From positions 48,970-112,969 of the forward strand of contig JALMLS010000491.1 in assembly GCA_038496445.1 (NCBI GenBank): a DNA stretch of 64,000 bases, written 5' to 3'. Made by a program: the position numbers and the translations under genes. A model generated the notes under the pieces. The model saw only the letters and a program-made list of their open reading frames with translations. It searched no databases and was not told where the DNA came from. Positions 34,029 through 50,936 of the stretch are shown here, piece after piece. This stretch comes from Trichosphaerium sp. ATCC 40318. Lineage: Eukaryota > Protista > Tubulinea. How positions within the stretch are numbered: position 1 is the stretch's first letter; every line of letters begins with the position of its first letter.

Positions 34029-35403
34029 ATGGCCAACATTGATAGTACAGACAACGGTAAGTGAAGCTCCTCAATTTTCAGCTCCATAAAAAAAAAAATT
34101 TGTCACGTGCCATTACGATTTTCACGAGAAACGTTTCCGCTTTTCGGCGTGGGTTGCCCATTGCGAGAAAAATTCGCTGTAGCGTTTTTTGCACACAATT
34201 TTGGCGCTGTCACTAACAAGCAAAAGTGTTTGGTTTAGTATGTCCGTGCGTAGGCAAGACAACCCACAAATTATTAAATCTTTTTGTGTGAAAGACTTTT
34301 TGATAAGTCCAAAGAAGTTTTCTCACTGAAAAAAACCAATTAAAAACATTGTTTGGCATCACTTCGCGTAGAGGATGCTACATAGGCATTTTTTCAACTT
34401 TTTGCACAAAGTTAGGGAATCGCAAGAAACTCAAAAGTACTTTTTCGTAACCCATACTTTTTCGTGATATATTCAAAGCCTAAAAGATTTTTCTTTACAT
34501 TGTTGTGCTTATTGTACTCACAAAGGTTTGGACATAAAAGAAGAGTATGAAGTAGGAGGTCATCTCAGATATAGGGGAGAGGTAAAGAATGGCAAGCATG
34601 ACGGTTTTGGTGAGCTGTATCATATAAAAGATATTGGCGAAATCAAACAAGGCGATACTCTCGAATACAAAGGTCAGTTTAAGGACAATGAGTATCATGG
34701 TGATGGCGAGCTGTATCTCTCAGATGGTACTCTACAATACAAAGGCCAGTTTAAGGACAATAAGTATCATGGTGATGGTGAGCTGTATCTCTCAGATGGT
34801 ACTCTCGAATACAAAGGTCAGTTTAAGGACAATGAGTATCATGGTGATGGTGAGCTGTATCGCACAAATGGTACTCTCGCATACAAAGGTCAGTTTAAGG
34901 ATGGTGAGGTTCATGGTGATGGTGAGTCTTATGACTCAAATGGTACTCTCGCATACAAAGGTCAGTTTAAAGGCGGTTTATATCATGGTGAGGGTGAGTT
35001 TTATTTACATGGTAGCCTCTATTACAAGGGTCAGTTTAAGGACCATTACCGTGATGGTTTTGGTGAGCTGTATCATATAAAAGATATTGGCAAAATCAAA
35101 CAAGGTGATACTCTCAAATACAAAGGTCAGCTTAAGGCCAATAAGTTTCATGGTGATGGTAAGCTGTATCACACAAATGGTACTCTCGAATACAAAGGTC
35201 AGTTTAAGGACAATGAGTATCATGGTGATGGCGAGCTGTATCTCTCAGATGGTACTCTACAATACAAAGGCCAGTTTAAGGACAATAAGTATCATGGTGA
35301 TGGTGAGCTGTATCTCTCAGATGGTACTCTACGATACAAAGGTCAATTTTTGAACAACCAGTATGAGGGTGTTGGAGTGTATTTTTATCAAAATGGTACC
35401 AAG
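34029..35403 (+). CDS. 5' part of the MORN-Roc-COR-PARP gene: MORN-repeat array
   Basis: ATG at 34029, intron ~34056-34524, then about 13 MORN units (YKGQFKDNxYHGDGELYxxDGTL). The frame is cut at the TSD GGTACCAAG; the ORF-track tail to 35466 is transposon sequence. Confidence 0.85.
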
Positions 35404-35457
35404 GTTCTCATGTTAAATGTCGATAAATTGACAAAAAATGTCAACTTTTTGGAAAAT

Positions 35458-37420
35458 CAGGTCTGAAAATTATCATGGTATTATACCGTATTTTATGGTA
35501 TAATCACCTTTTATGGTACAAGCTCAGTATAATTCATAATTATACCATATAATTATACCATAAAATATGGTATAATACCATGTTTTTTGGACAAATGGTA
35601 TAACAGCCATTATACCATGTTTATACCATATTTCAATTTATAGAATATAATTATACCATAAAACATGGTACTATACCATGGTATTATACCACATTTTACA
35701 GTACATTATACCATGCATTATACCATATAATTATATCATAAAACATGGTACTATACTATGGTATTATACTGCATTTTAAAGTATATTATACCATGCATTA
35801 TACCATATAATTATACCATAAAACACAGTATTATACCATGGTATTATATTGTATTTTAAAGTATAGTATACCGTGCATTATACCATATAATTATACCATA
35901 AAATGTGGTATTATACCGTGGTATTATACCGTATAAGTATAAGTTAGTCAAAGCTCACTTGGTTTACACTTGATTTAATAGCCTTTGGCCCTACGCAAAC
36001 GCCATACCACACAATGCTTTGACAGTAGCCGTTATTGAACATAATTGGCATATAAATGTGTGAAAAACAGTTTTAAGAGAGAAATCTGGTAACGTGCCCC
36101 AATTGCGGGCGTTTTAGGGATAAATTGGCCAATTTTCTCCGATTGACGGTATTTGAGGAAGAAACCACTCCATGTACCCCATGTTAGAACGCTACAGTGG
36201 TAGACACACCAAAAACGCGTTTAGTGCTCGAAAAATGCCCATTTGCAAAAAACCTCCAATTGGAGGTTTTTTTCCCCGGCTCTCATTTTTTTCTCCCCTC
36301 CATAGGCATTTTTACACTCAATCAATGCCATACAGCCTCATTTACCAAATCAGGAGCAAAATTATTTATTTTTTTTTGACATTTTTGATATACACTCCAA
36401 TGCATGTTAAAACGCGTGAATAGTGCTATAAGGCCAAGTTGTTTCAGAGCCTACCCATTTTTTGAGTTTTTTGGTTTTTTTTGGATTTTTTTTGAATTTT
36501 TCCCTACTAAATGCCTGCATTTGCCAGAACAGATAGCATTTAGGCTTCACACCCATGTGTTGACCTTACGAGTGATATTGTAAACCAATTGGCTAAGTCA
36601 GAGCACAAAACTAAGTCTTGTCCAGTTTATCGCCCGCACAACACAAGGTACGCTAAAAGTAGTTGTTTTGAAGCTGCTTGCCATAGGTTTTAACCAAGCT
36701 AGATAGATGATAAAAAAAAAACCAAGATGTGTTAGCTAACAGGTACGATTCTGCTAGAACTTGTTTCTGATGAAGTTGGCAGTTATTTTCATTTCTTTGT
36801 TTTAGTCTTGGTTTGGCTCCACCGCACAGGTCATTTGTTACTCCCAGTGCCGCCACCACAACAAAACAGCAATTTTTGTACGACTATTTATTTTGTGCAT
36901 CAAGTCTTCACTAATTCTTCTTCTAGTTTTCATGCTATGTCCATTCGATGCACTTACAGCAAGTACAATATTTTTTTTGAAAGTTATTTGATGTGTCAAC
37001 TACCACAAAAGAGAATATGGACAAAACCAAAGGTCATGGATGTAAACAAAAAAATGTATTAATAAATGTGGTTTTATTATTAGAACAGTTTTTACATGGT
37101 ATAATACACCTGGTTTTGTGGTATAATCTACCAAGTTTTAAGGTATAATATACCAGACTTTGTGGTATTATACTGTGTTTTATACCATGTTTTATGGTAG
37201 AATTATACCATATATTGCATTTTTTCAGGTGAAAAAATATGGTATAAATTCGCACTTTCTACTGCATATTTGTGGTATAATTTGGCTGTTTTATGGTATA
37301 AATCCTTTGATTTATGGTATATTATACTGGAATTTGTGGTATAAAATTGGAATCAATGGTATAATTATACCACAAATCCATGGTATCTACCATAAAAACA
37401 GCTCGAAAATTTTAGACCTG
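35458..37420. mobile_element. Nested non-autonomous TIR element with subterminal TTATACCAT arrays
   Basis: Ends CAGGTCTGAAAATT...AATTTTAGACCTG, flanked by AT on both sides; dense TTATACCAT repeats at ~35470-35935 and mostly inverted ATGGTATAA repeats at ~37095-37395. Confidence 0.8.
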
Positions 37421-37991
37421 ATGTAGCGTTCTAGGTCTGTTTGAGTAATTTTATTGAGTGAGTGCTGGAGTACATAGTACATACAAAAATCAAACGTGCT
37501 TGCATGGGGTAGACAGAAAATAAACCTCCTTATTTTTTGTAAACATGCAACTGCCTATTAACGTTATTCAAGGCTAAAAACCGCATGTATACATTGAAAC
37601 AAAGCAATGTAGAATAAAGAAACAGGATTTTGAAGTTGTTGAAAGGTTCAATGAACCACTTCTTTTAAAACAGCTCAAAACACAATAAATAATATTCACT
37701 ATGCGTAGAAAAGCCATACACCACTTTAACTGTTTTTTTACTTTTTTTAATTGTAAGAAACCCACGCTGTTGCATTAGTAGTATACAACAATTTAATATA
37801 CTACTATACATTGAATGGGAACTTTAAAGGCTACTTTGAACAGGCTTGGGGCTTCAATGAACTATGAAGTACCAAACTGCTTTAAAACTCATGGATACTG
37901 TTTCTAGCGCGTAGAAATAGTGTCAGTGTGAGTATTGCCGAAAAAGGCAGTGAACTTAAAGCTCATTTCTTATTTTAGTTAAAACAAGTTT

Positions 37992-40153
37992 ATGGAGGAA
38001 GCCACACCTCCACAATACAATTGTGCAGCTGATGTTACACCACATCTATTCAATACACTCGGTGTATGGATTGGTGGTGAGCGACTAGTACTTTACACCA
38101 ACCATAAAAAAGAATTTGCTTACCAATGGCACGTTGATCAGAAACCTAAGCTCAATGCAAAAGGAACAGCCATGATACACTATTTTAAATGTCCTAACCG
38201 CAATATGTGTAATGCCCGTGTGATATTACATCAAAAAAACTCTTTGAAAGGTCCTATAATCAAACTAGCTCAGAACAAAGGTGCAAACACTGGTTTCAAT
38301 ATTTTTTTCCAAAAAATAGTAATTTTTATTTAGAACACAATGAGCATTGCAAACCTACTCCAGAGCATAAATTAAAGTTACAGTATGCTGTAGGAAAGAA
38401 AATTCAAAAAGACCTTCGGCGCGGCATTGCACCAAGCACAGTGGTAAGCTTGTGTTCTCCCATATACCAACACTAACAACTTCATAGATGAAGACTTTAT
38501 TAAATGATCCAACAAAAAATATTCTAAACACTTTTGAAGTACCTAGTGGCCATGCCATGGCGTCACAAGTGCGTAAAGCTCGCAATTTGGAACGATTGCA
38601 CCCTGATGTACTAAAACAGCACAAACTCCTACTAATCCGCCATAGTTATTCATAAACATACATCTACAGTATCCTAAAGAGATTAAAATTCTAATTGCGA
38701 AAGAATGTGTTATTTCTTTTGTAAATCTTAGAGTGCTCTCTATAATCAAGAAGTTGAACACTAAAACACTCTTCCTTGATGCCATTCACAAGGTGTCAGA
38801 TACTGGCGCCAATGTACTGTTTTTTCGGTTAAATCTCTTCCCTCCATAACTCACTTACCCTTAGGCAATGTTGTATTGGGTCAGAGTAGAATCAGAAAAG
38901 CGTACAAAGGGAGTCAACCTTGGTTGGGCAATCACAGAAGGAAAAAACTTTGATGAGTATGTTTTCGCGTTCCGCCATATTAAAGACACCTTTGGGATGT
39001 TTTTTGAGCGTATTATGGCAGATTGTGAGCTCAATATAAGAAAGGGTATTTGGAAAAAAAAAACCCTTTTTTTTTATTTACACTTTTTTTAGCTGCACGA
39101 AAAGTATGGCCAGAGCAATTTGATGTTCACCATTGTCGCTTCCATGTGGCGGACGCATTTCGCAAAAAGCGCATTGAGCACGGGCTGGGTGGCAAGGTCA
39201 ATGATGGGGAGCGTTTGTGGTGTGAGCACATTATTGATAAGCTATTTTCAGCAATTACGAAAGAAGAATTTGATGAAAAATGGAAAACCTTTTATGAGGT
39301 ACAAGTGCCTTTTTGAATACTCATAACTTCAAATAGGACGGCCAATACCTCAGTGATAAAGTTAAAAAACATTTAAAGTACTTAGACAAACATTACATGA
39401 AGCCAGCATCAACAAACAATTGGTACAGTTCTTCTCTTTAGGTTTATTTACTAAATTTTTTACAAGGTGGCCACCAAGTACATGGGCTCCATATGCGTAT
39501 TTGAACAATGATGAAGCTAACTCTCACCGTACCAATAATACTAGTGAAGGAAATAATCGAGTAGTTCAAGAAGCATTGAAGTGGGAGGGTGCTAAAAAAG
39601 GAACATCAGAAAAAGTTGTTAAGGCTTTGGTTAGCTATTCTCATCTTTCCAAAGATGATGCTGTACGGTTGTTAAAAGGTGTTGGGGGAGTAAGAACTCC
39701 TAGAACCGCTAATAGACATCAAAAAGTTGTGCAAACAAAGGCACTTGCTAAGAAAAGTAAGTGCGAGTGTTTAGTTTTTTCATTTAATTATTCACAGGAA
39801 AAAACAACTCACCGAAAATAGCACACAAACTTATTAAGTTGAAGGAAGTACGAATGGTTCCATTAGCACTTTCTAAAATAATCTTTTATTAGGCTGAAGA
39901 AAAGAGGGCAAGGCAAGCTAAAAAAAAAGAAGCACATGCTAACAAAAAAGAACATGTGCCTACCAAACGCAAGAAACGCACAATAACTGTCAAAAAACGT
40001 CGTTTAGAGCCATCACCAAGAGCTGGAAAGCGCCAAAAAGTAGTTTCCAAGATTTCAAGCTCTGAACAAGATGAAATCATAAAGCAGTATGAAAAACGCT
40101 TGAAAGTAACTTCATTAAAGAGGACAACTCGCAAAAACTATGAAGAAAAATAA
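37992..40153 (+). CDS. MULE transposase with N-terminal WRKY/FLYWCH-type zinc finger (intron-containing)
   Basis: YFKC...C.A......HNEH finger; DDE triad LFLD(AIHK), IMAD(CE), RTNNTSE; CRFH (CxxH) motif; basic C-terminus. Start codon uncertain. Confidence 0.85.
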
Positions 40154-40369
40154 TAAAAAAACTTGTCGAGGATATTATTTTTTATTCTTTGAAGTAACCT
40201 AACATTCCTAAGTGACAAAATTTGTACTAGTAGCTTCTATTATCGTATATAATGTCCCTTTATACCGTATGCCGTGTAGGCACTTCATTAAATATGTCTC
40301 TGGTTATCAATGGGCCATCAAAAAAAAAGTTGACATTTTTGGTCAATTTATCGACATTCCCCAGCAGAC

Positions 40370-43300
40370 GGTACCAAGTACATTGGGCAATTTGACAACA
40401 ACAAGATTCAAGGTATTGGTGAGAAGTATTGGGCAGATGGTCGCAAATACATTGGTAAATTTGAGAATGCTAAGGCAGTAGGTAAAACACAGAAAAGTAT
40501 TGCTGGAAAACCAGACCAGGCTGCCTTTTCTAACAACATGGATAAAACATTCTGTGAAGAATCCGTTTTTCCTAGCAATGACATACAAGAAGATATAACA
40601 CCAGTTACTGTGTGTTCTGATGGCACTACAGATGAGAGAGATCTCAAGAAATTGTTTCCGAATCCAGATAATGCTATCCTTGATATCAATGATCCAACTG
40701 TACAAGGTATACCAGATGGAAAAAGAATGGTATTTGAATTTTATTCTAAAAGACGCTACCAATACTGTTCCAGTATTATTTTGAACCACCAAGATAGCTT
40801 TGAATCAGGTCTTTATGGTGATATTGTATTTATCTATGACCTTTGTAAAAAAGATCCTGAGATATCACTTCATGAAGGTGCGGTGTCTTTTATACAACTA
40901 CCTTTATACTTATTGATTATTTAAATAGTAACAACTATGGCACGTGGTCTTTCTGGAGTACGTGTGATACCCATAAAAAAGGACAAAATATCAGACAAAA
41001 TGATACAACAGTTTAAAGCCATTTATTGGAGTGACCTCAGTAAAAAGGCTAATTTAATGAGACATCACATTGCTGATGGAGTGAGTCATAACAACTACGA
41101 TTTTGTTGAGCAATTAGAAGCCAAAATAATGGTTGTAGGTCATGAAGGAGCAGGTATTTTATCCGAGTTGGATGACTGATACACTAAATATTAATTAGGC
41201 AAGACAACACTTGTGAGGACATTGGCAAAGGAAACAAATATAATAGCGGATTCAACTATTGGTTTTGATACATCACATCTCTCGTATGTTTAACTACTTT
41301 AGCGCTTGGGTTTAATGTGCTTTAGGTTCCAGGGCGTATCATTCACAGTGTTAGACTTTGCTGGACAGACGGAATACAAAGGATTACATAAGTACTTTTT
41401 AGCAAAGCAACTTACAATTTACATCATCGTTGTAAGTTCATAGTGCACCAATATCACACTTGTTTCCTTATCATTCATCTTAGATTGACTTGTCAACATC
41501 AATCAAAGAGCAGCAGAAACACCTTAAATATTGGTGTCGGGCTTTAAATGAGATACTACATGATCAAGATCCAGAACTATACTCAGTGATTGTATTTGGA
41601 TCCAAGTTAGATATCTTTTTAGGAGATATCAAGGCCAATAAACAATCACTGCTCCCTATCGGACTATCACTAGTACAGTACTTGTGCTTAGACGGTACCA
41701 CCTTTATAACTTTTTTACAATCGCTTATTCTTTGTTGTTTAGGAACAAGTGCTCTCGTCAAATTATTGGATCAGCAAGCCAAGTACTTGAAGGCCCAATA
41801 TCCAAAAGTACCATTGATCTACATAGATGTAAAAAAAGCACTTGAGAATACAATCACAAACAAGGATACCCTAAAAGGTAACATCATATCAGTGTACGTT
41901 GTGTGTTAGCTGTAGTGGGTCTTGCTTTTGCTAATCAAGTATTTAATTAGGAGGAAAGTAGTAGAACTGATACCCAAGATATGTGCAATGTCTCCAATAG
42001 AGTTGATTGCTGCATTGAATTACCTTCATTCCATTGGTAGCATCATGTTTGATGAGGTGTGCGCTTCTCAAATGAGTAATATGCTTGCTTAAACAACTGA
42101 CTTGTCTGTGTTTAGTCATCGTACATGCTATGTTTGAACCCTCCTATTCTATCTCGTATCATGAGTGCTTTTCTAGCACCCAAAGAACATCTTGATAGAT
42201 TGATCAAAAACAACACTCATAATCATCATGCTGTATTCACTGACTCAGAAGCTAAATCTCGAATCTCAAAGCTATTTCCAAAATGCACTAAACGTGAAGT
42301 GAAGCAGGTGATGAAATTCTTGGTACAAATGTCGTTCTGCGTTCGCTTGACAGAAGAAGAAAAGGTAACAGATAGTGTATGTACTCTATAACTCATTGTC
42401 AATGTATTTATTCAGGTTGTGTATGGCGCTGCTGGATACCTTATTATATCGCTATTACCTAAAGCTGATATGTTTTACTTTCCTCCATTAACCCAAAAGG
42501 AGCAAAGTATTACGTTAGTTAAGACAAAGAACAAGAACCCACATGAGTTACCAGAAGTATTCTCTTTATCTAAATCACCAACAAAGTGGAAGATATTATC
42601 GTACACACCTACAACAGACTCTAAAGTTGAACATAAAGTGGTAGAAATAGTCACCATAAACAAGGAAACCAATAAAATAGTACGGCGTATTTCGTATTCC
42701 ATAACAATTCAAAACTAACAATATCACGTGTTAGTCACTACCTGATCAATATGAGGTCATACCACATGTTTCAAAGTTCTTGGCATACACCTTTAACTCA
42801 CAAGATCTACCTATAGACATATTTAATGACTTGCAGAGAAGACTGAGAAGTACGCCAACATGAACGGTTTATGATTATGATTAGATACTAAACACTTACA
42901 ATAGAGTTCCAAAACAAAGAGTTTCGTTTGTTTTCAAACTTGATTGTACTCTCTGATTTCTATGGCAATATCATCACATTGTATTATGTTGATCATAGCA
43001 TCAAAATTGTCATTAGAGGCATAGTACCACAGCTATGGATGGTAATAACATGAACAGAAGTTTAAACATTGACATTTTTAGGAATCTCTTGCTAGTTACC
43101 TAAAACCTTTGGACATCACTCCAATTCCGCTATGTCCAGCCAGCATACAATTTGGAGAGTTTGTTGAGGTCACAAACAATTTGTATGAGTGCAAGAAGAT
43201 AAGTGAGTGTATTAGGCATACATTTATACACGTGTAGTTGTCATATTATACAACTAGATGGCATATTTCCAAGTTAACAAACTGATTATTTCTTAGAACA

Positions 43301-45067
43301 TGTTGTCACTGAGAGTCATTTAAAAGAAGGATTTCCTGTACTCGAACATGCACGACATAATATATGGGGTAGCTTGCATGGAGAAAGATTTCTGAAAATG
43401 GGTGACTGGGAAACACCTCAACAGTATCCTGGGTTACGAATCACGTTTCTCACAAAAGATGAAAAAAACAAAGTACAACCCACATTTGAATACCATGACT
43501 TTCTTACTAAAAGCATTGATAAGGAACGTTATGATGAGTATCTGAGAGCTAGCAACATGTTTTATGAGTTCATGGGGACTGACAGTGCTTCATTTTATGA
43601 GTTGGAGAAGATTGCATTCTTGAACAATCCAAAACTTGAAGACAAATTTGAGGAGCAATACAATACTTTTGTCAAAAAAGTACTTCAATCCAAAAAATCA
43701 GGCAAGTTACACCCTTGGTCAGCTTTTTCTAATAGTTTAGATGTGAATGATGATTCTACTGTGGATGAAGATACACGTAAATTACAAGAACGGACTTTGA
43801 ATCATTTGAAGAGCCATGTGATGCGTGTTTCAGGCAATGAGCAAATCAACCTCATGCCAGGATTACATGGTACATCAGAGGTATATCACATTTATTCTCA
43901 TTACTACCAAGAAATAGTTAACCTTAGATTTTAGGATACTAGCTTTAAGATAGCTTGGAACAACTTTAGAGAACCACATGAGAATACAAACAAGAAAGAT
44001 GAAGGATACTTTGGTATGGCTTAGTACCAAGTTAGTTTAATTAACTAAATTGTAACCAGGAAATGGGATTTACTTTACTCAGTATCCTGATTGTGGTAAG
44101 TCATTTTATGCAACCGTCGTGTATAGTGGCCACTACCCATGTACCAATTTGTATTCTTGCATTAACAATTGAGGTAGGAAGGAAGTATGCTGAATGGGAT
44201 AAAAAGGAGAAGAATCCATGCATGTTGATATCATGGATAATGATGGGAAAACCTTATCCAGCAACAGAACAACCAGCGCCAGGCGATACCAACTCTCTTT
44301 ATGGAAAAGAATGCAAGGTACAACTCTTTTTTTTCTGCATGTGCCTTCTTACAGTTTTATTTTCAGAAAGGTTATGATTCTCACTATGTACTCACTAAAT
44401 CGACTGGGTTTCCAAGTGGCATTGATGATAAAATAGATCAAAACGAGATTGTTGTATTTTCAAAAAACCAAGCATGTAGACATCACAAGCGAATGTGTTC
44501 TTATTTCATGATTTAGATTCTTCCACGATACCTTGTATACTACAAAGCAATAGACAGTACCAATATCGACTCATATGAACTCAAGTACAGGGATGCTAAA
44601 TGTCTTGTTTTGTGGGTTGACGCTAATCTATCAGTTGAAAACAAGAAGATAATGGAAATGCTTAAAAACAGGCCAAAGAAGACAGAGGTACACAAACCAA
44701 ATACAGGCATTCATCTAAAGAAATACAAAGGTGTTGGTGATGAAGTCATCATCTGCGGTTTTGGCATGGATCGATAAGTTCAAAGGGTTCTGTAACAACA
44801 GATTACATATCATCACAAATAGATATCGAAAAGGTGATGGAGATGAGCTAGCAGCAGAGAAGTTGATAAAGAGCATTAGAAAAATTAAAATATGTGCCAA
44901 AACACCTATTCTTGTTTTTTGTGGTATGTCAAGTAGTCCTTTATTAATCACGTGATTTTTTGTTAACACACTGTTTGTTAGGAGACACGTCAAAGGCAAA
45001 ATACCTCAAGAAAAAATACAAAAAGGTTTCCATCACGAATAAAGTTCAAGATGTATTGGAAATTTAG
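40370..45067 (+). CDS. 3' part of the MORN-Roc-COR-PARP gene: last MORN repeats, Roc GTPase, COR, PARP-like ART domain, receiver-like domain
   Basis: GTKYIGQFDNNKIQGIGEKYWADGRKYIGKF (MORN); KIMVVGHEGAGKTT, STIG, LDFAGQTEY..LHKYFL, FGSKLD (Roc); ALNYLHSIG (COR-like); LHGT, GYFGNGIYFT, GYDSH, NEIVVFSKNQILPRYLVYY (ART with H-Y-E); VLWVD...IITNRYR...PILVFC (receiver-like). Exact 3' end uncertain. Confidence 0.85.
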
Positions 45068-45183
45068 GAATGTAAGAATAGCTTACATCTTTCCTCAAAA
45101 CTTTACTATTACTCAAGTTATGTTCAGAGTTCAGACATTGCTTCTTGCTTCTACCAACAATGTTAATAAATTAAGAACGCACT

Positions 45184-45244
45184 ATTTTGAGTACCGTTTC
45201 AACAGTACTAGAAAAAATTATACTGTTGAAACGGTACTCAAAAT
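45184..45244. repeat. Perfect 24-bp-stem hairpin with a 13-nt loop
   Basis: ATTTTGAGTACCGTTTCAACAGTA-CTAGAAAAAATTA-TACTGTTGAAACGGTACTCAAAAT. Confidence 0.95.
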
Positions 45245-46106
45245 GTAATAACATAGTTGTCAACGAACAAATGCCACTTTTATACAAGCTTGTCTTTTTG
45301 GTGCTTCAATGAGAGACGACACGAGGAGCTAAACGTTAATCCCATTAAATAAGTACATCACCTTTTTATGGAATGACGTTATTGTAAAATGTGAAAATCC
45401 CCGCTCCCAAACTTCCTGTGATGTATATAGTGCTTAAGCCATAGCGTATTCAACCGCGCAGCGAAAATTTCTCTACTTCTCGATTGGAACACCGGAAAAG
45501 GACAAAGTCGCGAAATGTTTTCGGCGGATTGTTTGCATAGTATACCGCCTTGTATCAAGTGCCTTGATGTTAATTAAACGGGTTTCGGCCTAAATCATGG
45601 TGGGTTAGTTCAGAAAGACAAAAACCAAATCAAAACCATCTATTACGCGGCTACATGACAGAGTTTATCACATACTGCTGTTTCTTAATGCTACTTTCTA
45701 AACTTGCTTCCAAAAACAGCAAAACGCGAATAAATACACGATATCGACTACACCTACGCATTAAAACACTGTAACAGACGAATAGTAGAATTATACTAAT
45801 TAGGAAACCAGAAATGCGCTTTTTTAATAAAAATAAACAGTTCTGCAAGTAATTAGATCTCGACGCGTAAAGAGTAGTATCTAGTCCAAAAACAACAGAA
45901 AACTAAAAAATTTCATATTTAGCGAAAATAGGTCAATAATTAACGACAATTATCGTACACCGTCATTGCTCTAGTTTTATTGCAAACATAGGGGTTGTAG
46001 CGGATCCGAAGCGAAAACCGAAAACCTGAAATTGTTATTTTTAATTAGCTAAAAAAATCAAATAAAGTCAATAGAGGACCTCATTTTCTGCAACTATTTG
46101 ACAAAC

Positions 46107-48415: not shown

Positions 48416-50936
48416 TTATTTTACTCTTATTAGATTTGCTCTATCATTGCACGTACATAAAGAAGGGTACTTTGCACATTTCGTACAACGATTATCAGAA
48501 GTACTTGAAATACAATTGAGGATTTCATTTAAAACACCTTTGTAGTCCGTGGCCTCTGCTCGTTGCAAACAACGTCTCCAATTGAACGGTAGAACTCTTG
48601 CCCACGTCTGTTCTAGTGCTTCAGCACGCACTCTTTTAAAAAGCTGATTACCATCAATGTGTGCTTCTAGTAAGCCCTGGTATGCTATATCAACTTTATC
48701 CTTGTTACTCTTGGACAGGAAAAAGTATACCATCACGAAGGTAAATGAGTACAAGTCATCCTTTGGTGCATAAGCATGTTGTGGGGAGGTACCATACCAC
48801 GTTTTGTACAATTGTGGTGCAAACTTGACACCTCCACTTATACTTATTGGAGCAGTCTCTGTTGTGGCAGCTCCCCAATCAATCAACATATATCGTTCGG
48901 CTTCTTCATAACCTCTCGGGAGTAGCATGATATTTGAAGCTGAAATATCTCTTAAAGAACGAAGAACATTAATAATTTTGTAGAATAATTAATGAGTACC
49001 TGTGAACAACACCTTTTTTGTGAACAATCTCAAGAGTTTCAATGACTTGGTTTGCAAGCAACTCAAAGTCAAACGGAGCTTCTTCGTAGCTTTGGCAAAT
49101 ACAATCCATTGCAAATCCATTTGGAGCTGTACCAACCTGCAGAAACAATTAAAGCAAACTTGAGAAGAACAATAAAATGTTAAGCGTTTTGAAAAACCGT
49201 TGATAACATGACTTAAACGTACAACTTTTGGAACACCAGGAACATCTTTGAGAAGATCTAATATTCTCATTTCTCCATCCATTTTTGGCTTTATTGGGGA
49301 GTCCACGTCTTCCAAGTAGTTCTTAAATGCAACATACTTTGGAGGATCATTATTGGATAAGTACGTCATGTAGACTGTTCCATGAGCACCTATGCCAAGT
49401 ACTTTTCGTGGTACATACTCAAAACCGTTGATTGTAAATACTTTTGAATGGTACCCAAGGTCACCGAGCTTGTAATTTAATAAACTTACCAAATGCTTTA
49501 GTCCTTCACCTGGAGCACTTGATTGGATCAAGTCCATTTCAGGAGTTGCATAATACATAGTCTTGGCTACAAGACTGCGTTGTTTGGCAACCTTGAAAAA
49601 TTGAATTTTCTGATAATTTTGAAGTATTCCATACACAAATTCACGACGAGGCCGGGCTTTAAGAATCCTGTTCATGTCACTCCATATCATGCCTTTGTTG
49701 TGTGCGGTGAATGAAGCTATAAATAATAAGCAACAAATAAAACCATGTAAAGTGTCAGTACATACCGTTGCCTTCTAATATGTCCCAAGTTAACACGTGA
49801 TGAAACAATGTACAATCTCTTTCACGAATGGTTTTGAGTTGCGGTGTGATGCGAAAACGACTTGGAAGAAACGATTTAGCATCTGGAACGACATTTGCAC
49901 GAATATTTGGACAAATATCATCACGTGATAAAAATGATGCAAAGTCAGCAGTGTATTTGTCAAGCGAACATGATTTGAGCTTTAACATCATCGATTGAAA
50001 TGTTTGACATGACTCAATGTATTGCTTGGACGTTTCAGGATGACAAAATGAGTGTTGATGTTCTGTGTTTTTAGCGATGGATTAGGCAATGGCAGGATAC
50101 CCTTACAACAAAAATAAGAAAAACTTGAGTGCTACGGCATGAATCAAAAAGAAGAACAAAAAAAAAAAGCAATGTTTGGAAGAAAATATTACCTTGCATC
50201 GTTTTCTGGCTCAAGGATGCATCTCTAAATGAATACAGTAACTTCAAGTACAAATTCTCATTCCTATTTTCCATAGCTCTATGGCGTTTGTATTCAGCTT
50301 CGTTTTCTTCTTCAGAACAACGCTGTCTTTTTTTAAGAGTCCGTAATATTTCTTTGTTTTTTTCATCTATTCTTGCATTTTTTTCAATTTCTTCTTTCAT
50401 TTCTTCTTCAACTTCCTTCCGCATTTCAACTTTAAGAACTTTGGATACTAACGTATCGAAGTAATCAGCTAGTAGCTTTTGGCCTATATAACTTTCAGGC
50501 GGTTTGTAAGTGTCTGGATTTTTCAATTCTAGAAATATATTGTGAGCTGACCAAATCCATAGTGTATGAGATAATGAGTACCTGCAGTCTGTTTGCTACA
50601 AGCATCAAACACCCTATCCACTATATCCACCTTACGCAATCCCTTTGTAACTGTGACATTATACTGTGCAGCCATGGCAGTGAGCTCGTTGATGGAGAAT
50701 CTTTTCAATTGTTTTTTTGTCAAATTTACACTAGCATTATCCTGGTATCACTTAGCAAGGTACAAGAGTGACCCTGAACTTACCTTTTTGTTGTTACAGG
50801 CGTCAAATACCAATTTTGCAAGCTCTGTCTTACGCAATCCCTTAGTGACAGTGACGTTACACTTCGTTGCAATGGCTGTAAGTTCCTTGACATTGAATTT
50901 GTGGAATTGTTTCTTTCGCAATAAAGCTGTTGTCAT
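48416..50936 (-). pseudogene. Crinkler-like HeH(x2)-REase-like-protein kinase paralog 1 with one in-frame stop
   Basis: Kinase motifs LGIGAHGTVY, VAFK, HRDISASNIM, LIDWG; exon structure matches 54696-57188; TAA at 50082-50084 where the paralog has CAT. Confidence 0.7.

Follow-up and report, generated by a model that had tools for sequence, protein, structure and literature searches.

The stretch analysed here (the window) comprises 64,000 nucleotides (nt) of Trichosphaerium sp. ATCC 40318, positions 48,970 to 112,969 of contig JALMLS010000491.1 (assembly GCA_038496445.1), and all coordinates below are counted from its first letter. On its + strand, which carries every feature described here unless stated otherwise, lies a gene that starts at 34029 and ends with a stop codon at 45065–45067. 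Our model divides this gene into 21 exons that encode 302 and 1,220 residues on either side of an inserted transposon, with no internal stop or frameshift. The locus is quite probably a single Roco gene encoding 13 MORN repeats followed by some 190 residues of linker, a Roc GTPase, a COR-A/B region, a Cys/His motif, a PARP-type ADP-ribosyltransferase (ART) with an H-Y-E triad, and a pseudo-receiver. Output would be provided by the ART, and a terminal inverted repeat transposon between MORN units 11 and 12 likely blocks synthesis of the full-length protein.

The gene model was built from contig junctions, tblastn alignments to relatives, and the local splice consensus. Spliced contigs from the public runs X3 and X4, both of one organism, were placed over positions 39500–45300 and were taken as RNA because they skip introns at GT-AG borders. 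The putative exon 1 (34029–34056) opens with an ATG and spans nine codons plus one base. No other ATG can be joined to the MORN exon in frame, the splice donor being GTAAGT at 34057; the putative intron 1 (34057–34525, 469 nt) has GTAAGT...AAAG borders that restore the frame. Downstream of the element the model contains 19 introns of 40–94 nt, with donors beginning GTA (14), GTG (four) or GCA (one). Eight introns are backed by the X3/X4 contigs, with borders that are GT..AG or compatible and in one case GC..AG: 42365–42415, 43042–43081, 43881–43934, 44014–44059, 44096–44177, 44318–44366, 44472–44516, and 44924–44981. Support for the intron at 43881–43934 consists of the loose end of a contig at 43881, and a joint listed nearby has other borders; for the intron at 40878–40928 (splice 40877/40929) it consists of the loose end of a paralog contig. 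The intron at 44472–44516 is of the GC-AG type (GCATGT...TTTAG), and contigs from both X3 and X4 omit exactly these 45 nt; a GC donor appears to be in use in this gene family.

A decayed pseudogene with internal lesions was considered and rejected, as both apparent lesions are intronic. An in-frame TAG at 43932 falls within the intron at 43881–43934 and an apparent frameshift near 44720 falls within the putative intron at 44688–44730, so the gene is intact except for the insertion. Two contig pieces (42193–42362 and 43081–43195) match this copy without a single difference. Most other contigs over the same placed region are 5–10% different from it, which indicates that several paralogs are transcribed. 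A count of synonymous and non-synonymous differences against the paralog contigs (16:24) was discarded as too small and mixed. A second paralog was sought within the window and none was found, and an Rfam scan of the window gave no match. Marine metagenome contigs (X1/X2) also match parts of the gene, with 100% identity over the 302 nt of 42386–42687; at 44376–44720 such a contig shows six differences and then a 2-nt indel within the putative intron at 44688–44730. The marine sample therefore contains this organism or a closely related strain that has paralogs.

The MORN exon (34526–35403) contains 11 units of 23–24 residues in an array that begins at about 34570, and it scores 95.4 bits against Pfam MORN (PF02493, cut-off 22.5). 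Two further units (40379 to about 40486) open the exon that follows the element (40379–40877), which then runs into the start of the linker, a region with no recognised domain. The pattern count is thus 13 units, 11 upstream and two downstream, where the original prediction had put about 15. The insertion point lies exactly between units 11 and 12: left of the element a complete unit ends in ...YQNGTK, and to the right of the second target-site duplicate YIGQFDNNK... continues in the identical frame. Once the element and one duplicate are removed the MORN array is therefore continuous, just as had been proposed. Because units 12 and 13 share one exon with the linker that leads to Roc, the MORN and Roc parts are not two genes, and the proposal that all domains belong to one chain stands. 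A MORN protein and an unrelated Roc-PARP protein that are fused in appearance only would fit with the element parting most of the MORN repeats from the rest and with the lack of RNA across the junction, but such a pair of genes is highly improbable: units 12–13 and the linker form one open exon without a start codon before it, paralog RNA joins this exon to the following one, and frame and repeat phase match exactly across the insertion. Within the array, a pair of units at residues 57–103 (34690–34833) is identical in protein sequence to residues 232–278 (35215–35358), and the atypical 32-residue units at residues 25 and 176 correspond to each other. This pattern suggests a recent block duplication or conversion inside the MORN array.

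Relatives of the downstream part are few. HMMER with the largest exon against 1.84 billion representatives returned just 27, a homologue search with the best full-length one, P0005 (1,131 residues), found only two more, and a metagenome scan with the largest exon gave no match. The spliced downstream part aligns with P0005 with an E-value of 7.8e-82 (Z = 1.8e9) and is collinear with it over Roc, COR, ART, and the C-terminus; the E-values against the Clydonella and Mastigamoeba proteins are 2e-54 and 6e-49. The named relatives are EP00727_P001066 of Mastigamoeba balamuthi, annotated as a 'hypothetical protein', and EP01094_P000972-974 of Clydonella sp. ATCC50884. The remaining ones are unnamed or 'hypothetical', and P0005 and P0048 are Logan or metagenome proteins. 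Pfam cut-offs are passed in four relatives that are collinear with the downstream part, P0005, P0018, P0036, and P0048, by both Roc (37–48 bits, 48.3 in P0005; cut-off 27) and PARP (30–50 bits; cut-off 26.7), so that profile searches bear out these two domains of the original prediction. The Mastigamoeba protein clears the PARP cut-off only, its Roc scoring 22.7 bits. Roc/Ras-type GTPase, ankyrin, and PARP are the only Pfam domains found in the relatives. Mastigamoeba, Clydonella, P0005, and P0048 have the Roc-COR-Cys/His-ART-pseudo-receiver core in common with this gene, whereas their N-termini differ from its MORN array, with ankyrin repeats in Clydonella and no repeats in P0005 and Mastigamoeba. 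The Clydonella relatives are Trinity transcripts, and hence ankyrin, Roc, and PARP are on one mRNA in that organism.

The Roc GTPase domain (41117–41792, five exons) was placed by its motifs and by Pfam and profile matches. The G1 motif GHEGAGKT (41138–41206) is interrupted by an intron, and G3 (DFAGQ, 41354–41368) and G4 (GSKLD, 41598–41612) follow; all three are intact, as had been noticed at first sight. An exon fragment of this gene reaches 20.2 bits against Pfam Roc, under the cut-off of 27, and single-exon scans with Pfam were otherwise nearly empty. Profiles made from the family reach further. The Roc-COR profile matches Methanosarcina barkeri Roco2 (4wnr) with an E-value of 1.6e-17, a family profile matches the Roc domain of LRRK2 at about 1e-16, and the match of the Roc-COR profile to LRRK2 residues 1332–1582 (about 1e-15) extends past Roc into COR-A. 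The COR-A and COR-B region (41814–43120, seven exons) was assigned by collinearity with P0005 and by the fold of the P0005 model. An AlphaFold model of P0005 residues 125–640 aligns with LRRK2 residues 1329–1789 at Z 20.8 over 409 residues, with LRRK1 at Z 20.1, and with the Chlorobium tepidum Roco protein (3dpu) at Z 18.6 over 385 residues. Plain small GTPases align with this model over just about 160–186 residues, and only Roco structures align across 380–412 residues, COR-A and COR-B included. The COR-like region of the original prediction was thereby recovered at the level of fold, through P0005, and stayed under the threshold of Pfam COR-A. Roc motifs, a COR directly after Roc, and the presence of both in one chain with more domains are all found, and the gene product qualifies as a predicted Roco (LRRK2-family) protein whose COR rests on fold evidence from the relative P0005. 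Part of the COR-B region (42447–42571, about 125 nt) has 16 differences between this copy and a paralog transcript, 12 of them non-synonymous. Over its full length of 199 nt the paralog piece has 19 differences. The residues concerned are 555–596 of the downstream part, where protein variation among the paralogs seems to be locally concentrated.

Between COR and ART the relatives carry a PLC-x2-C ... C-x3-H motif. Its counterpart here was placed by family alignment at 43130–43301, across the putative intron at 43203–43296. This copy reads PLCPAS at 43130–43144; the second Cys is replaced by Ser, and the His is preceded by one additional residue. The motif is possibly a small zinc site.

The PARP-type ADP-ribosyltransferase domain follows in six exons (43413–44552), and its five introns are supported by contigs. 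It lies in a stretch that is collinear with residues 702–1081 of P0005 (i-E 5e-40). The catalytic triad is composed of a His in HGTSE (43866–43880, H codon 43866–43868), a Tyr in GIYFT (44065–44079, Y codon 44071–44073), and a Glu in QNEIVVF (44439–44459, E codon 44445–44447). In the profile alignment the family motifs wHGt, GiYF, and DEiVVf line up with the H, Y, and E of PARP4 and PARP2, and the triad called in the original prediction (HGT, YFT, NE) is thus upheld. The profile of the C-terminal half of the family matches PARP4 (8.9e-11) and also PARP2 and ZAP. An AlphaFold model of P0005 residues 600–1131, with a predicted local distance difference test (pLDDT) score of 72.8, was matched by Foldseek to PARP2 (4.8e-8), PARP4, and PARP1, all at about 5e-8. 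By VIA, the ART part of the model matches tankyrase 2 (Z 16.3, root-mean-square deviation 2.6, 177 residues) and also PARP15, ZAP, and PARP10, the PARPs ranging from Z 14 to 16. The closest PARP relatives are PARP4 by sequence and tankyrase by fold. Of the features by which a PARP is recognised, the catalytic fold with the PF00644 signature (through the relatives) and the H-Y-E triad are present, and NAD+-dependent ADP-ribosylation is the predicted activity.

A PARP fold may also serve as a non-catalytic binding module, and the domain could be a pseudo-PARP like that of ZAP or TASOR in a protein that acts as a scaffold. The top structural matches do include ZAP (Z 15.1) and the pseudo-PARP of TASOR (Z 14.7), and the family has a Gly in place of PARP1 Ser904, which we take to be the nicotinamide-binding Ser. 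Nearly all relatives nevertheless keep the H-Y-E triad together with the NAD+-site motifs around it, and the inactive PARPs that we know of have lost the triad, which we count against a binding module. We consider such a role rather unlikely and retain the domain as a predicted enzyme. In an acidic, Ser-rich insert of the ART, at 43699–43743, paralog contigs lack 39 or 42 nt with no splice borders at the gap, an in-frame variation in length.

The C-terminal domain (44589–45064) is receiver-like, with an alpha/beta fold that may be CheY-like and no phospho-acceptor Asp. In the P0005 model the last 125 residues form a five-stranded alpha/beta domain. By VIA its best natural matches are receivers, at Z 7–7.8 over 105–116 residues, a level that VIA treats as unspecific. 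Higher scores (Z 10) are reached by de novo designed alpha/beta folds, and the resemblance to receivers may therefore be generic. In the family alignment an invariant Asn (ITNR, 44812–44823) occupies the presumed phospho-acceptor position, which we equated by eye with the CheY phospho-acceptor site. The receiver Thr position is a Cys and the Lys is not kept, again by eye, so the phospho-acceptor Asp, acidic pocket, and Thr/Lys that mark a receiver domain are not found together here. Searches against Pfam Response_reg and PDB profiles returned no significant match, and ESM features placed the domain with the OKR_DC_1_N and Response_reg clusters (0.89–0.90), which serves as a lead only. In its five strands the domain resembles CheY-like receivers, and it differs from them in having Asn for the phospho-acceptor Asp. 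Of the receiver-like C-terminus proposed originally, a resemblance in fold at an unspecific score was recovered and the receiver signature was not; the domain is at most a pseudo-receiver.

The element that interrupts the MORN array is a terminal inverted repeat transposon of 4,966 bp (35404–40369), its bounds given by a 9-bp target-site duplication. The left copy of this duplication, GGTACCAAG, lies at 35395–35403 and encodes G-T-K, the right copy lies at 40370–40378, and the two are identical at 9/9 positions. The 35-nt arms of the inverted repeat, which show 34/35 (97%) complementarity, are found at 35416–35450, 12 nt in from the element end, and on the − strand at 40324–40358. A 30-nt core of the arms occurs at just two sites in the 64-kb window, with none expected from 100 shuffles. 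Complementarity does not reach the outermost 11–12 nt of the element (4/11 match, by eye), and the element ends are therefore set by the duplication and the host sequence and not by the inverted repeat. Sub-terminal repeat arrays occupy the left part of the element (35467–35938), where three 80-nt tandem units are accompanied by dozens of direct and inverted copies of TATACCAT / ATGGTATA, and a second cluster of these motifs is found 1.3 kb further inward (37093–37376). These sub-terminal repeats may be candidate transposase-binding sites.

A script model predicts a transposase gene at 37992–40153, with about 590 residues in 10 exons that are open throughout. Its introns (38–51 nt, GTA...TAG) resemble those of the host. 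MULE-like D...D...C-x2-H and N-x2-E-G motifs were recognised in the predicted protein by eye only, and its ten single-exon pieces had no match in Pfam, the MULE DDE family (PF10551) included. The element has the terminal inverted repeats and, at 9 bp, a target duplication within the 9–11 bp by which Mutator-like elements (MULEs) are recognised. The earlier assignment as a MULE is consistent with the duplication and the by-eye motifs, and a profile match did not accompany them. Judging from the modelled transposase, this may be an autonomous element with recent activity. The insertion looks recent, because the duplication is preserved at 9/9, the inverted repeat at 34/35, the transposase frame is open, and the rest of the gene is intact.

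Most likely the insertion prevents a full-length protein from being made at this locus. Splicing could in principle remove the transposon as a giant intron (35404–40378), which would restore the exon exactly and allow the full-length protein to be made: the element opens with GT, the second target-site copy closes with AG, every downstream exon is intact, and two contig pieces show zero differences from this copy. The donor of this intron would, however, be GTT, and T at +3 is found in 0 of the 19 downstream introns; its 4,975 nt would stand against 40–94 nt for the local introns and about 470 nt for the first one; and no contig spans the junction. Removal as an intron therefore seems improbable, and it is the unused GTT donor and the would-be length, about 50 times the usual, that lead us to favour loss of the full-length protein. 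The downstream half could alternatively be expressed alone from a start in or just after the element, giving a MORN-less Roc-COR-ART protein. P0005 and the Mastigamoeba protein, which are without N-terminal repeats, provide a precedent, some contigs from beyond the insertion match this copy exactly, and the linker contains an in-frame Met. Contig depth is nevertheless zero at 40276–40663, and the identical pieces are short (115–170 nt) and could derive from an identical paralog or an insertion-free allele, so that we regard expression of the downstream half as unlikely. Absence of the full-length protein from this locus is the outcome that we retain.

Several points weigh against the reading of this locus as one Roco gene with an ART output. 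The domains were called through a relative with roughly 30–40% identity and through collinearity with it. Confidence in the Roc-COR model of P0005 is modest (pLDDT 62), and Pfam COR-A remains under its cut-off (13–16 bits versus 35.3), being the top match in three of five relatives. The family has Gly at the PARP1 Ser904 position, and catalytic activity of the ART is a prediction from sequence. The kind of run behind X3 and X4 is not on record, and we take the contigs as RNA from their intron skipping. Exon 1, intron 1, and the introns at 41695–41742, 43203–43296, and 44688–44730 are purely inferred. Finally, none of the placed X3/X4 contigs covers 39500–40663, and thus none crosses the right junction of the element.

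Comparison with known proteins shows both how familiar the plan of this gene is and where it departs. LRRK2, LRRK1, and the Dictyostelium Roco kinases likewise place COR-A/B immediately after Roc and unite N-terminal repeats and a C-terminal enzyme in the same chain. Relative to the LRRK2 type, a PARP-type ART takes the place of the kinase, the pseudo-receiver that of WD40, and MORN repeats that of the ARM, ANK, and LRR repeats. The Roc-COR tandem is also shared with the Chlorobium tepidum Roco and Methanosarcina barkeri Roco2 proteins; these two prokaryotic proteins carry LRRs and, unlike the product of this gene, lack an enzymatic output domain. With PARP4, PARP2, and the tankyrases the ART has its fold and the H-Y-E triad in common, whereas here it sits behind Roc-COR and has the Gly for Ser904. 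No other PARP-associated domains were found in domain scans of the relatives.

Full-text literature searches returned no mention of Roc-COR with a PARP or ART output. Targeted term searches likewise met no mention of the combination in a Roco review, an eLife paper on conflict systems, surveys of the PARP family, and a brown-alga ROCO survey. In that survey the partners are kinase, death, TIR, helicase, LRR, ANK, TPR, DEP, WD40, RhoGEF, and PH domains only (PMC11378527). The architecture is real and is a variant of the Roco kind that is undescribed in the literature searched, in agreement with the original prediction, in which no described MORN-Roc-COR-PARP protein was recognised.

The same prediction called the architecture NLR-like and saw in it a candidate innate-immune or cell-death receptor. 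The likeness to NLR/STAND receptors such as plant TIR-NLRs lies in the logic of a repeat sensor, an NTP switch, and an NAD+-using enzyme, and to that extent the analogy holds. It does not extend to the components: the NTPase is a Ras-like Roc and not the NB-ARC or NACHT of a STAND protein, and the effector fold is PARP and not TIR. As an NLR-like family, these proteins would sense with swappable repeats, switch by Roc-COR, and use the ART to deplete NAD+ or modify targets so as to kill or protect the cell. By analogy, Roco-ART genes might then be a lineage-expanded intracellular surveillance system in an amoeba-type protist, in which a pathogen or damage cue makes Roc-COR oligomerise and the ART triggers defence or death, an NLR analogue built on a Ras-like NTPase. 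Besides the shared sensor-switch-enzyme logic, the many transcribed paralogs at 90–95% identity and the variable N-terminal modules, MORN here and ankyrin in Clydonella, would suit this role. MORN repeats, on the other hand, are usually membrane or cytoskeleton adaptors, no STAND NTPase is present, and PADLOC defence models matched neither Roc nor ART, only the ankyrin part of one relative. The literature points both ways: an immune-receptor role has been put forward for brown-algal LRR-ROCOs (PMC11378527), and the Roco functions studied to date lie in trafficking, chemotaxis, and the cytoskeleton (PMC6337361, PMC11378527). We regard membership in an immune or cell-death receptor family as doubtful, and a surveillance system of the kind outlined is a speculative extension that we hold to be equally doubtful.

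For the Roco protein with an ART output that we favour, a mechanism can be proposed because it is analogous to the established behaviour of LRRK2 and bacterial Roco proteins. The MORN array would dock the protein on a membrane or a partner, and GTP binding together with COR-mediated dimerisation would switch the C-terminal enzyme on and off. The output would be ADP-ribosylation of nearby targets or NAD+ turnover, replacing phosphorylation, and the pseudo-receiver may act as a regulatory or oligomerisation module.

Here a coding repeat array has been hit by a Mutator-like element that is apparently autonomous, and this copy offers a natural test case of loss of function or of splicing. For the family, the significance lies in the pairing of domains. 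In the Roco proteins studied, among them the Parkinson's disease kinase LRRK2, Roc-COR is coupled to a kinase or to no enzyme, and a natural family that couples Roc-COR to an ART would provide an independent system for understanding how Roc-COR controls an output domain. It would also add a GTP-regulated branch to the PARP superfamily, one that goes unmentioned in the PARP surveys checked for GTPase-related terms. If the immune reading were true, receptors of the 'sensor-switch-NAD+ enzyme' type would be extended to a new class of NTPase.

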